Source: Octopus sinensis (Eukaryota). From it: a stretch of DNA of 64,000 nt. Numbering within the stretch: position 1 is the first letter of the stretch; every line of letters starts with the position of its first letter. The notes beneath the pieces are model-generated. The model made no database searches. It was given only the letters and a program-made list of their open reading frames with translations, and was not told the origin of the DNA. Location: the NCBI RefSeq assembly GCF_006345805.1, contig NC_042998.1, forward strand, positions 83,886,001 through 83,950,000, given 5' to 3'. Below are positions 35,082 to 39,624 of this stretch, one piece after another. A program made the translations under genes and the position numbers.

Positions 35082-35960
35082 GCCTGCATACATGTAACTA
35101 CACATAAAGATGTGGGGGTGTAGGTGTGTTGAGCGTGTGTAAAATATATTACTCTGTATTATATTATACTAGATTTTACGTGTATATATTTCGGTGTCAA
35201 CGGATGTAGTATTTGTACAAAACGAAACATGTATAGCACTCTGAATATTTCCAACCCATCGGTCTGTGACGAATGGAGATAGAAATAACGTTCTGTGGAA
35301 TATAAAACCTATTTTTAGGAAGAAATAAAAGAGCTGTTTCAATTCTTAGAGCCATGTTACTTTTACACATCAATGCACTTTTTCAGCAGAGATGTATACA
35401 ATTTATTTGACAAAATCTTTCTATGCTGACGTTGAATTATGATGTTGTATCTGCATAGAATATGAATGACTTTCCAGAATTCTAATGACTATTGATCGAT
35501 TATGCAATGAGTGAAACAGTTCTTTAGTTCAATCTATATTTACTTTAAGTTTATTATGTGTATGATTTATTAACAAGCTGTGGAAAAAAACTGTTGAATA
35601 AGAGAAGTCCGTTATTAAACATACGCATACACATTCAAATGCTCAAAACACATGCTTACATAAATACATGATGGCTGCAACTCGATTTCAAACCATCGCT
35701 TGATTTTTTTATCTTAAAACAGCATAGACGTGGCTTATATTAAACCTACTGGACCTCACCTCTGAGTTGTACAGCGCTCCCTTTAGTAACAATCGAAGCC
35801 TTTTGATTTTGGTAGCCATGATCCTGCATGATGAGCAGATGAGGCGATAGCTAGGATAGCTATACATACATATATTCTTTCATACATACATACATACATA
35901 CATACATACATACATACATACATACATACATACATACATACATACATACATACATACAAA

Positions 35961-36270
35961 ATACCTACGCTTATCTATTGAGAAATCTACAGTTATTCTA
36001 GCTAGATTACAAGTTCAGGTTTATACCCGTAATTATTGGGACACTGGGAGATGTAACATACTGCCTAAATACCATTCTTGAGAAATTAGGCTTCTCAAAA
36101 CCAGAACGGAGAAAGCTGATTCGAAGACTACGGATCCAATCCATCAGTGGAACTGTAAAAATTTGTAAAACTTTCCAGAAGTTTATCATTTTAGTATATA
36201 TGGGCATGTCTAGACATGCAACTATATGCATGAGAATACATAAATAAAACAAAACATTCAAATTTGCACA
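35961..36270 (+). mobile_element. 5'-truncated RLE LINE 3' end, (CATA)n-associated family
   Basis: YKFRFIPVIIGTLG...LEKLGFSKPERRKLIRRL; lies between (CATA)n tracts at 35880-35957 and 36271-36341. Confidence 0.88.
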
Positions 36271-36341
36271 CATACATACATACATACATACATACATACA
36301 TACATACATACATACATGCATGCATACATACATACATACAT

Positions 36342-39300
36342 AACTCGCAGCGACAAGTCGCGTATTTGGCGTGGGAGACATTTTATCGAAAATACGATGA
36401 ATACTATCTCCAGCTTTGGAACCACAACTATCAGCCTTGTTAAATAACTGGTTACTCTTCAAATGAATTAACTGAGGGAGCCTTTTATTCACGATAGTAG
36501 TGATTTTCGACTGAAAATTGAATTTAGCATACAGAGAGTTACTACAAATAACATGGCTGGACACATCAACAACAACACAACCGAGGAACAGAACGAAAAC
36601 AACAGCTCAACAGGTAAACAAATTCTTTTTAGTTGTACGTATAGAAGAAACCGTAATTACAAAACTCATTTTTTCTTGGAGTTATGAATTGAATACTGGT
36701 CTATTTAATTGCTACAAAAAGCGAAACAAAACCCCGCTGTTGGCTATATGAATCGATTGATATGATATTGTGACGATCTGCATCCAGAATTAAATCATTT
36801 TACTGCGAAGCAACTACGCCAACAAGCAACATTTGTAGCATATAGGAAGAAGGTTAGTAACTGTTACTTTATTAAAAAATCCAACATTAACCTTCTTCCC
36901 AAATCTATAAACAAGCACCTGGAAGAGACTTGGTTGTTGGATATTGGTACAAGCAGCTAACCTTCTACTGACCATATCTTATCAATTTGTACCAGCAAGC
37001 TCTCAATGGGAACAGTAGCATACCACATTGGTTAGCTCTGGCAGAGACAAAATTGATCCCCAAATGCAGAACTACTCACATGGCAAAAACCTACCGGCCA
37101 ATTGCATGCCAGAACTTAATGTATAACCATGGGCCATGGTGAAACTAGTAACATCATCACAGCAGAAGTAGCTGAGATGAAGGGAGTCTGGGGATGTGTC
37201 GAACAATTGTTAATCAACAAAACTGAGACGTCAGAGGTACGAGAGTACAGGAGAAACCTAGTTTCAATGTAGCTTGACTACAAGGAAACCTTTGACTTTG
37301 TTCCCCACTCATGGCTGCTAGAAGCCCTTCAACTTGCTAAAGTTCCAGTGATCATAGTCAAAGCTATAATTGACCTGACATCATCGTGGGCCACCATCTT
37401 GAAATTAAACACGAGTGAGTGTATTATCACTGATAGAATATAGTATCGTAAAGGTATATTCCAAGGGGACAGCCTCTCTGCGATGTTGTTTATACTTTAT
37501 GTAAACCCCTTGTCATTCATGTTAAAGGAGTCTGAATGATATCTCACTGGTTCAGAAGAAAACAGAAATACCAAAATCACACACTGTTTCTTTGTGGATG
37601 GCTTGAAACTTTATGCAAAGAATATGCACGAAATGAAAAAGAGCATTGACCAAGTTACAACATTTTCAAAGGATGTAGGGTTGCAGGATAAATGTTGTTA
37701 TATGGTTGTGAAAAGGAGGAAAACTGTAAACCAGGTTAGTAACATCTTCAGCAATGATCAGACTGTTTACCCCATGTCTGACGAGGAATTTTACAAGTAT
37801 CTAAGGGTAGGTGAAAACAAATCTTACAATGGCACCTGTAACAAAACACGTGTCACTAAAGAATATCAAAGCCGAATAAAGAAACTTTGGACCTCAGAAC
37901 TCTCTGCATTCAATAAAACAGGGACCCATAATGTGTTTTCGGTGCCAGTACTCATACCAACATTTGGGTTGCTTGATTGGACGCTTAATGAGACCAAGCC
38001 ATTGATGTGAAAACCCGAAAAATAATTTCCATATAAACAGTGACGTAAATCACCCCTACCTAAAACGTAAACAAGGTGGCAGAGGCTTAACATCAATCCA
38101 AAATGCCTTTCAATGTCGTATCATTTCCGTTCGGCAACATCCTTTAATCACCAAGTGTCGATGTGCATCACTTGACCAAGTTTGCATACATGAAGCTGAT
38201 AACATCATTAGACGTGGAAGGCAGCTCCTTGAGCAACATTCTTTGTCTGATAACCTAGAATACATGCCCAAAGAAGTCGCACGACTCTACCGCAACGTAT
38301 CATCAGATGAAAGGATGAGACTATATGACTATGCATGGATATGTTAGTAGAAAGCTCCGAGATGATAGTAACATTGATCATGGAAGCAGTCTATCATGGA
38401 CCAGTAACCAGATTACTACCTCCCACTTTGAAGGGTATGCGTTTGCAATCCAGGAACAGGAGATATCAACCAAGTACCTGATGCATAAAAGGGATAGAAA
38501 TGCAGGAAAAGCAGTAAAATGCGACAACCGATACAGACTTTGTGGAGTTAACACCGAAGATATCACCCACATCATAAGCAGTTGTCATCACGGTATTATC
38601 TACCGATGAAACATGACGTTGTAGCTAGGACACTCTATAACGAAATCCGTCGAAAGGATAACCCCGAAGATAAAGAAATAAAACTTATAGTTTGGTAGAA
38701 TCCATAGCTACTCATAATAAAAAGGAGTACTAGTGGAATATCCCAGTGAAGACCTCAATAAAATGTAACTACAACAGATCTGCTATAATAATTTGGGATA
38801 GAGAAGAGAAACTTTGTACAGTTACTCTTTTACTCTTTTACTCTTTTACTTGTTTCAGTCATTTGACTGCGGCCATGCTGGAGCACCGCCTTTAGTCGAT
38901 CAAATCGACCCAGGGACTTATTCTTTGTAAGCCCAGTACTTATTTTATCGGTCTCTTTTGCCGAACCGCTAGTGACGGGGACGTAAACACACCAGCATCG
39001 GTTGTCAAGCAATGCTAGGGGGACAAACACAGACACACAAACACACACACACACATACATATATATATACATATATACGACAGGCTTCTTTCAGTTTCCG
39101 TCTACCAAATCCACTCACAAGACATTGGTCGGCCCGGGGCTATAGCAGAAGACACTTGCCCAAGATGCCACGCAGTGGGACTGAACCCGGAACCATGTGG
39201 GTAGTTAGCAAGCTACTTACCACACAGCCACTCTTGCGCCTATGTTGTGGAAATTAGCTTCCCAGCGGATGTTAGCATAAAGCTGAAGATCAGTAAAAAA

Positions 39301-39607
39301 GAGGATACCTATGCTGAACTATTGAGAAATCTGCATAAGCTCTATCCAGATTACAAGTTCAGGTTTATACCTGTAATTATTGGAGCTCTGGGATATGTAA
39401 TACACTACCTAAATACCAATCTTGAGAAATTAGGCTTCTCAAAACCAGAAAGAAGAAAGCTAATTCGAAGACTACAGATCGAATCCATTACAGGAACTGT
39501 AAGAATCTGTAAAACTTTCCAGAAGTTTATCATTTAAATACACATGAGCATGTCTAGATATGCAACTATATGCATGAGAACATAAAGAAAAACATACAAA
39601 TCTGCAC
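36342..39607 (+). mobile_element. Degenerate, internally deleted RLE-type LINE (R4/NeSL-like), (CATA)n-associated family
   Basis: YRPIAC, LDYKETFDFVPHSW, KGIFQGDSLS, FFVDGLKLY, RLCGVNTEDITHIISSC, EISFPAD, FIPVIIGALG; interrupted by a SINE at 38823-39242. The 5' limit is inferred from the (CATA)n edge. Confidence 0.88.
38823..39242 (-). mobile_element. Full-length SINE type A with internal (TA/TG) microsatellite and (AAGAGTAA)n tail
   Basis: Head ataggcgcaagagtggctgtgtggtaag, CORE-like cttgggcaagtgtctt, tail cagtcaaatgactgaaac. Confidence 0.92.
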
Positions 39608-39624
39608 ATATACATACAAACAAA

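Follow-up and report, generated by a model that had tools for sequence, protein, structure and literature searches.

Restriction-like endonuclease (RLE) long interspersed nuclear elements (LINEs) of the site-specific R2 type serve as the model system for target-primed reverse transcription (TPRT), which has been shown biochemically for R2, and work is under way to adapt them for DNA insertion. How the targets of RLE LINEs are read, and how they change, is known mainly for R2. Dong, a member of the R4 clade found in Bombyx, Anopheles and Biomphalaria, is an RLE LINE specific for (TAA)n (PMC3812793; PMC4640811), and Togen, a NeSL-related element of fish that targets (TG)n, and some leech HERO families are further RLE LINEs with microsatellite specificity (PMC4640811). 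Among LINEs that carry an apurinic/apyrimidinic endonuclease (APE), Waldo (R1 clade; Anopheles and earwig) targets (ACAY)n (PMC3812793), and Mino, Kibi and Koshi target (AC)n, (TC)n and (TTC)n, respectively (PMC3812793; PMC4640811). In a 64,000-nt stretch of Octopus sinensis DNA (the window, to whose positions the coordinates below refer unless another contig is named), a LINE family related to R2 appears to insert almost only into runs of CATACATA, in a single orientation. The region from 35862 to 40032 is very probably one (CATA)n microsatellite that has been hit repeatedly by this octopus RLE LINE, an R2-type and probably R4/Dong-like element with a predicted protein of ~1,100 aa that would integrate by TPRT.

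Copies of the family were found by comparing the interval 36342-39607 with the window by blastn, and their junctions were read from the raw sequence and a three-way alignment (Table 1). CATA units lie on the sense strand of the element at all three 5′ junctions in the window ((CATA)6, (CATA)24 and (CATA)18), and copies 2 and 3 are arranged head to tail within one CATA tract, both as described in a first-pass annotation of this DNA. A fourth copy, from O. vulgaris (L001, 5150-5455; 87.6% identity), adjoins (CCAT)n(CATA)3 at its 5′ junction. The copies begin at different points of the element: in copy 3 coordinates, copy 1 is truncated at 39378, copy 2 at 39305 and L001 at ~39291, and copy 3 is full length. 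Because these differently truncated copies and the full-length one all adjoin CATA, the repeat on the 5′ side represents the target and not a product of tail slippage, which the annotation had also considered an insufficient explanation. That it might instead be a part of the element is ruled out by its presence at three copies with different truncation points. At random loci of the window, a perfect (CATA)3 stands directly upstream of a given position and strand in 0.29-0.47% of cases, compared with three of three window copies and L001, and with this background for each junction the chance of three or four independent CATA junctions is p < 1e-7.

On the 3′ side, the CATA tract extends past 39620, where two 110-nt units are followed by ~45 more CATA units up to 40032. 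The annotation had placed CATA repeats at the 3′ ends of the three copies as well, which holds in part: copy 2 has a long run, but at the ends of copies 1 and 3 there are no more than 4-6 degenerate units (a short degenerate run in the case of copy 1), and this apparent tail is probably internal, as discussed below. Its further proposal that the family feeds the CATA tracts of the window fits about 5 of 15 tracts, which touch the family; the remainder do not. Outside the window, JGI metagenomes contain no exact match to a 30-mer taken from the 3′ end of the LINE, no record was found for the protein P0002 or for the two ORFs of a (TAA)n element of the window, and the matches of the protein P0003 in Logan are confined to 1.5-kb contigs cut by another repeat.

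The same arrangement is seen in relatives from other animals, which were retrieved from JGI and ENA contigs by a metagenome scan with the protein profile A2 and by four protein look-ups, and which are intact or nearly so. A tetranucleotide repeat adjoins the 5′ junction in all ten relatives whose 5′ end is visible, CATA in five and CTTA in five, and it is the same repeat, on the same strand, as that of the tail (the 3′ side is not reached in L008 and L009). The phase of the repeat is variable at the 5′ junction and fixed at the 3′ junction. The (CATA)n specificity put forward in the annotation is thus upheld by the octopus junctions and by relatives flanked by their own tail repeat, be it CATA or CTTA. 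In the contigs of L045-L048, which measure 21 kb to 9.8 Mb and include some long-read assemblies, ordinary genomic DNA is visible beyond the repeat. The upstream repeat of L046, like that of L001, is a complex CCAT/CATC/CATA microsatellite and therefore represents pre-existing DNA and not a LINE tail. L045 and L008 reproduce the layout of octopus copies 2 and 3, with the 3′ fragment of an older copy, then the repeat, then a full-length element. Sample ERZ25878469 holds CATA and CTTA families in one genome, each of which keeps its own repeat at both ends.

Individual relatives show additional features. The 5′ flank of the CATA-type element L048 (3384-3555 of its contig) reads (ACAT)13(ACTT)14(ACAT)7, a CTTA-type tract inside a CATA tract that may be the trace of a cross-insertion between the two target types. 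In L046, an identical 66-bp sequence preceded by (GATA)n occurs at 8440-8503 and 12806-12872, flanking the element and its CATA tracts, so that this element seems to sit inside a larger tandem or dispersed repeat.

To judge from its sequence, the family is an R2-group RLE LINE with a single protein of ~1,100 aa that comprises an N-terminal three-helix domain, a reverse transcriptase (RT), a CCHC knuckle and a C-terminal PD-(D/E)xK RLE. Searched against the PDB, the full-length relative P0013 alone and the profile A2, built from 12 sequences, find R2 proteins and no others (9nl3, 9dou (R2Tg), 9nl2, 8gh6 and 8ibw (R2Bm); best E = 1.8e-49). The alignment of A2 with R2 spans RT, linker, CCHC knuckle and RLE, and places kPD, iiEis and K opposite the KPD, VVDVT and K of R2. 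The knuckle is recognizable in the copy 3 piece at 38319-38606 as C..C(x9)H(x6)C, which aligns to CRHC...H...C of R2. The RLE type assigned in the annotation is borne out both by this profile match, which continues through the RLE, and by ten stop-free pieces of copy 3, which, starting at RT motif 1 and reaching the C-terminus, align in order to the intact proteins P0006 and P0013. In Pfam searches, P0013, P0006, P0010 and P0016 match RVT_1 with E down to 7e-29, and the full-length relatives yield only RVT_1 and sometimes zf-RVT, with no APE domain; the separate open reading frame (ORF) pieces of copy 3 give only sub-threshold matches, including a weak one to zf-RVT, the pieces being too short. 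The catalytic PD is intact in the O. bimaculoides protein P0002.

The N-terminal domain of the relatives is conserved over ~75 aa and predicted to fold into three helices (AlphaFold core pLDDT ~88). The corresponding alignment, A5, contains no Cys/His motif, i.e. no zinc finger, and the domain has no Pfam match. A Foldseek comparison with the PDB returned nothing significant, only weak Myb-like (E > 2) and helix-turn-helix matches.

Copy 3 is dead, as are all family copies in the window. Its coding path switches among all three frames with many stops (its ORF pieces were searched separately, and no protein was read across a stop); relative to L002, it has a deletion of ~950 bp near 36900 (8654-9611 in L002), and the RLE coding region is interrupted by an unrelated ~420-bp repeat. 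Further copies of this repeat lie at 47201-47567, 32814-33016 and 9128-9260 and elsewhere, and ARAGORN finds no tRNA in the inserted one. The true 5′ end of the family has nonetheless been kept, because copy 3 shares with relatives both the 5′-terminal motif and the N-terminal protein motif: the ATG at 36553 starts the sequence YRRNRxY...YELN...HPE, with which the intact ORFs of relatives also begin. The region upstream of L002 was considered as a continuation of the copy 3 5′ untranslated region (UTR) and ruled out, as the two do not align. At the other end, the C-terminal RLE piece is 44% identical to the C-termini of P0006 and P0013, and its ORF (39247-39537) matches annotated proteins in O. 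vulgaris (82%) and O. bimaculoides; the RT piece matches an O. sinensis protein at 66%. Excluding the 3′ module described below, the full element measures ~3.8 kb. The 5′-end motif that follows the repeat, ..CGCAG..(N)..GGACGTGTGGATTAyCGCTC, is clear in L006 (116-155) and L007 (104-145) and weaker in octopus (36343-36380) and L010 (101-125). Rfam searches of the 5′ ends of L006, L007, L009 and L010 at E<=1 revealed no ribozyme like that of hepatitis delta virus, only spurious microRNA and snoRNA matches on the repeat, and 35000-41000 has no match at the gathering threshold.

Downstream of the LINE 3′ end lies a structured unit of ~110 nt, which is present at three of the five octopus loci (copy 3, with two units, L001 and L002). 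A few CATA units intervene between the LINE and this module in each case, and more CATA usually follows it. In ~96 kb of octopus DNA, no module was found away from LINE 3′ ends, despite ~10 other CATA tracts in the window, and the modules diverge in step with the LINE bodies. Module A is probably the true 3′ end of copy 3. Modules A and B differ to the same degree as the two LINE bodies, and module B probably belongs to copy 2 as its 3′ end, which was pushed downstream by the entry of copy 3 into the inner CATA tract of copy 2. The CATA run after the stop codon is then probably an internal microsatellite of the 3′ UTR, with the module as the real 3′ end, and the boundary at 39607 is probably not the true one. 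The module is predicted to fold back on itself into a long hairpin, with its two ends paired in the closing stem (-28.6 kcal/mol, z = -3.2), and the proximal 3′ UTR (39538-39616) has no significant RNA fold (z = 0.1). Most likely, the module acts as a 3′ RNA element that is recognized by the protein. A diverged relative of the module lies at ~4025-4090, preceding the (CATA)6 of copy 1. The 3′ UTR of L007 (3900-4460) contains 4-5 tandem units of ~95 bp ahead of the tail, and repeated 3′-UTR modules may be common in the clade, as in the case of the two octopus modules.

In a maximum likelihood tree, the octopus pair (the RT piece of the window and O. sinensis P0004, 100/100) falls within a 100/100 clade in which both CATA and CTTA families occur. 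P0208 and P0183, the basal lineages, are of the CATA type, and L011 (CTTA) stands outside the 100/100 clade. The two targets differ by one base per unit, and parsimony gives four switches between them, of which branches with good support force at least two. As far as its sequence allows a placement, the family is probably R4/Dong-like: in a 25-residue block of the thumb region (PMC7650587 Suppl. Fig. 6), which is only a short motif, the CATA clade is closer to R4_Hmel than to HERO, R2 or NeSL, and the block departs, as weak evidence, from the HERO pattern (V/L)R.WL. Octopus repeat papers describe abundant 'Dong-R4' LINEs and few Hero LINEs.

Integration is repeat-specific and strand-specific, with old tails re-used as targets. 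The repeat stands on the sense strand at both junctions of the family and its relatives, independently of the 5′ truncation point. By analogy with the biochemistry of R2 and from the set of domains, integration would proceed by TPRT. The RLE would nick the (TATG)n strand, and the freed 3′ end would pair with (CAUA)n at the 3′ end of the RNA and prime cDNA synthesis. The 5′ end would be joined imprecisely inside the upstream repeat, which would explain the variable repeat phase there. Old copies offer new targets in their tails, and nested head-to-tail arrays such as copy 2, CATA, copy 3 result. Priming might also begin at the internal CATA run of the 3′ UTR and thereby yield copies without the module.

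Several other explanations can be set against this reading. The head-to-tail order of copies 2 and 3, and the similar tandems in L045 and L008, could conceivably arise in a LINE with no target specificity and only a CATA tail, if 5′ repeats were produced by concatenation through RT template switching or unequal crossing-over. This is very improbable, since copy 2, which stands furthest upstream in the array, is itself bordered by (CATA)24 on its 5′ side, with unrelated DNA beyond, the solitary L046 and L047 have the repeat on both sides within long contigs, and the complex microsatellite upstream of L046 and L001 is not a LINE tail. Still harder to credit is a passive origin, in which copies inserted at random and survived preferentially in microsatellite-rich, gene-poor DNA. 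Such a process has been proposed for Drosophila Waldo-A and Waldo-B near CA repeats (PMC3812793), and the window is indeed very rich in simple repeats (260 rows in Tandem Repeats Finder, TRF), but the junctions are base-exact, involve one repeat type among dozens in the window and keep a constant strand. A rival of more weight, if still an unlikely one, concerns the 110-nt unit, which could be a separate non-autonomous element resembling a short interspersed nuclear element, borrowing the LINE machinery and the CATA target and often landing in LINE tails. All units share the same starting base, as expected of a discrete element, each has its own stem-loop and CATA tail, and two stand in tandem behind copy 3 with none directly behind copy 2. 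Against this, none occurs apart from LINE 3′ ends in the octopus DNA searched, with its free CATA tracts, units and LINE 3′ ends are equally numerous in L001, in L002 and in the main array of the window, and unit divergence follows LINE divergence.

The remaining alternative concerns the source of the specificity. The protein could be blind to sequence, with the target selected through pairing of the (CAUA)n tail with the nicked (TATG)n strand and inherited because the target supplies the tail of every new copy. The strand orientation is absolute, the CATA and CTTA units are one base apart, the tree shows two to four target changes, the flank of L048 combines both repeats, and neither an N-terminal zinc finger nor a recognizable Myb domain is present, all of which would suit such a scheme. 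On the other hand, the nick still has to land within the repeat, CATA and CTTA families are faithful to their own repeats within ERZ25878469, and the predicted N-terminal three-helix domain is conserved and a candidate DNA binder. In this extreme form, the scheme is doubtful. Between a wholly blind protein and one that reads the repeat, the frequent switching between CATA and CTTA and the mixed L048 flank favour a large role for the RNA tail, and, given the conserved N-terminal domain and the fidelity of the two families in one genome, the protein may also take part in recognition.

A number of points weigh against repeat-specific insertion by this family or against parts of its description. 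The octopod sample comprises only six copies, and same-strand CATA is present at the 5′ junction of four of them; L002 (O. sinensis) and L003-5 (Logan contigs) are without clear 5′ CATA, both being old and rearranged with uncertain 5′ boundaries. Inside a microsatellite, neither an empty site nor a target-site duplication can be read, and those JGI and ENA contigs that were built from short reads and terminate in the repeat might represent collapsed consensus assemblies. Copy 3 has lost the catalytic PD by mutation (NRSA), the octopus branch of the tree is built on decayed fragments of 156-280 aa, which makes its placement provisional, and the four module sequences show no compensatory changes, their stems being kept via one-sided changes only.

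The window contains other features. A second and much better preserved RLE LINE occupies 21296-25300 on the minus strand, with ORFs of 817 aa (22530-24983, RT) and 193 aa (21772-22353, CCHC and RLE, NRPD intact) that have been broken apart by an expansion of (GAA)n/(AAG)n (22546-22625). It is considered Dong-like because ~300 bp of (TAA)n/(TGA)n adjoin its 3′ end, and its identity to the CATA family is no more than 31-33%. Inside the (TAA)n tract (21410-21590, minus strand), the 23-mer ACGACTCTGCCAGCTCGCCGCCT occurs twice, ~150 bp apart, and the pair could be a duplicated segment of the tract or minimal remnants of another element. At 19092-19741 and 20104-20797, the same series of simple repeats appears twice in TRF with an offset of ~1,012 bp, which suggests a tandem segmental duplication of ~1 kb. 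Two ORFs of 164 and 179 aa lie at 29720-30900 on the plus strand, the second with a motif that by eye resembles GIY-YIG, as in Penelope-like elements, and a 169-aa ORF at 55738-56247 on the minus strand resembles by eye the N-terminal DNA-binding part of a mariner-type transposase.

Table 1. Features of the CATA-associated LINE family in the Octopus sinensis window, and repeats flanking its relatives
Feature	Positions or source	Strand	Description
Copy 1	3770-3999	-	5′-truncated 3′ fragment: RLE end and proximal 3′ UTR; blastn 85.2%/230 bp to 39378-39606
(CATA)6 at 5′ junction of copy 1	3998-4023	-	TRF
(CATA)24 adjoining 5′ junction of copy 2	35862-35958	+	TRF, period 4, 24.2 copies
Copy 2	35961-36269	+	5′-truncated 3′ fragment: C-terminal RLE and proximal 3′ UTR; blastn 85.4%/309 bp to 39305-39607 (85.4-86.5% to copy 3)
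(CATA)18 after copy 2, integration site of copy 3	36270-36342	+	TRF, 18.2 copies
Copy 3	36343-39607	+	Longest window copy, true 5′ end
Copy 3 5′ UTR	36343-36552	+	5′-terminal motif common to L006, L007 and L010 right after their repeats
Copy 3 decayed ORF	36553-38822	+	N-terminal three-helix domain, RT, CCHC knuckle, RLE start
Unrelated interspersed repeat, ~420 bp, within RLE coding region of copy 3	38823-39243		blastn
Copy 3 C-terminal RLE piece, 96 aa, stop-free	39244-39537	+	ORF 39247-39537
Proximal 3′ UTR and 4-5 degenerate CATA units	39538-39616	+	Sequence
3′ module A	39617-39737	+	~110-nt structured unit ending in CATA; TRF 124-bp repeat
3′ module B	39744-39852	+	85-87% identity to module A
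Terminal CATA tract, ~45 units, closing the array	39853-40032	+	39853-39944 and 39965-40032
L006	JGI		5′ (CATA)n; 3′ (CATA)n
L007	JGI		5′ (CATA)n; 3′ (CATA)n
L046	ENA, 69-kb contig		5′ (CATA)n; 3′ (CATA)n
L047	ENA, 1.4-Mb contig		5′ (CATA)n; 3′ (CATA)n
L048	ENA, 21-kb contig		5′ CATA; 3′ short CATA
L014	JGI		5′ not visible; 3′ CATA tail
L010	ENA assembly, metagenome scan, 4.9-kb contig		5′ (CTTA)n; 3′ (CTTA)n
L045, two elements (L045e1, L045e2)	ENA, 9.8-Mb contig		5′ (CTTA)n; 3′ (CTTA)n
L008	ENA assembly, metagenome scan, 4.8-kb contig		5′ CTTA; 3′ not reached
L009	ENA assembly, metagenome scan, 4.6-kb contig		5′ CTTA; 3′ not reached
L011	ENA assembly, metagenome scan, 4.7-kb contig		5′ not visible; 3′ CTTA tail

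With close relatives one base apart in a four-nucleotide target, and with several genomes supplying intact ORFs, it becomes directly testable whether the site is selected by the protein or by the RNA tail. If the relationships proposed here are correct, the intact elements L006, L007, L010, L046 and L047 would form a natural series on how the target of an RLE is encoded. For octopus genomics, the family accounts for part of the (CATA)n load and for nested arrays of LINE fragments, and the true 3′ end is probably missing from a library consensus that was trimmed at the first CATA run. Taken as a whole, the elements may represent an undescribed and widespread clade of tetranucleotide-specific R2-group LINEs with repeated switching between (CATA)n and (CTTA)n and a new N-terminal three-helix domain in place of zinc-finger and Myb domains, a proposal that is advanced tentatively, at somewhat less than even confidence.

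Microsatellite-specific RLE LINEs are already known from Dong, Togen and some HERO families, and it is the CATA/CTTA target that is the variant here; in the searchable literature, to which Repbase Reports do not belong, no RLE element with a CATA or ACAT target was found. Dong resembles the CATA family in its single ORF, with RT, CCHC and C-terminal RLE, and in a target microsatellite that also forms the tail. Its target, however, is (TAA)n and that of R4 is a site in the 28S rRNA gene, whereas the CATA family is flanked by (CATA)n or (CTTA)n. Togen and the HERO families likewise combine an RLE with a microsatellite target, but their repeat units differ. The (ACAY)n target of Waldo includes (ACAT)n, which is the same repeat as (CATA)n. 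Waldo carries an N-terminal APE, whereas none was found in the CATA family, which has a C-terminal RLE, and because the APE domain is absent the shared target would be convergent, as the first-pass annotation had reasonably supposed. R2, whose structures (8gh6, 9dou, 9nl2, 9nl3) provide the sole relatives in the PDB, aligns to the CATA clade through RT, linker, CCHC and RLE; it differs in bearing zinc-finger and Myb domains at its N-terminus and in targeting a unique site in 28S rDNA, whereas the CATA clade has a predicted three-helix N-terminus and a repeat as its target.

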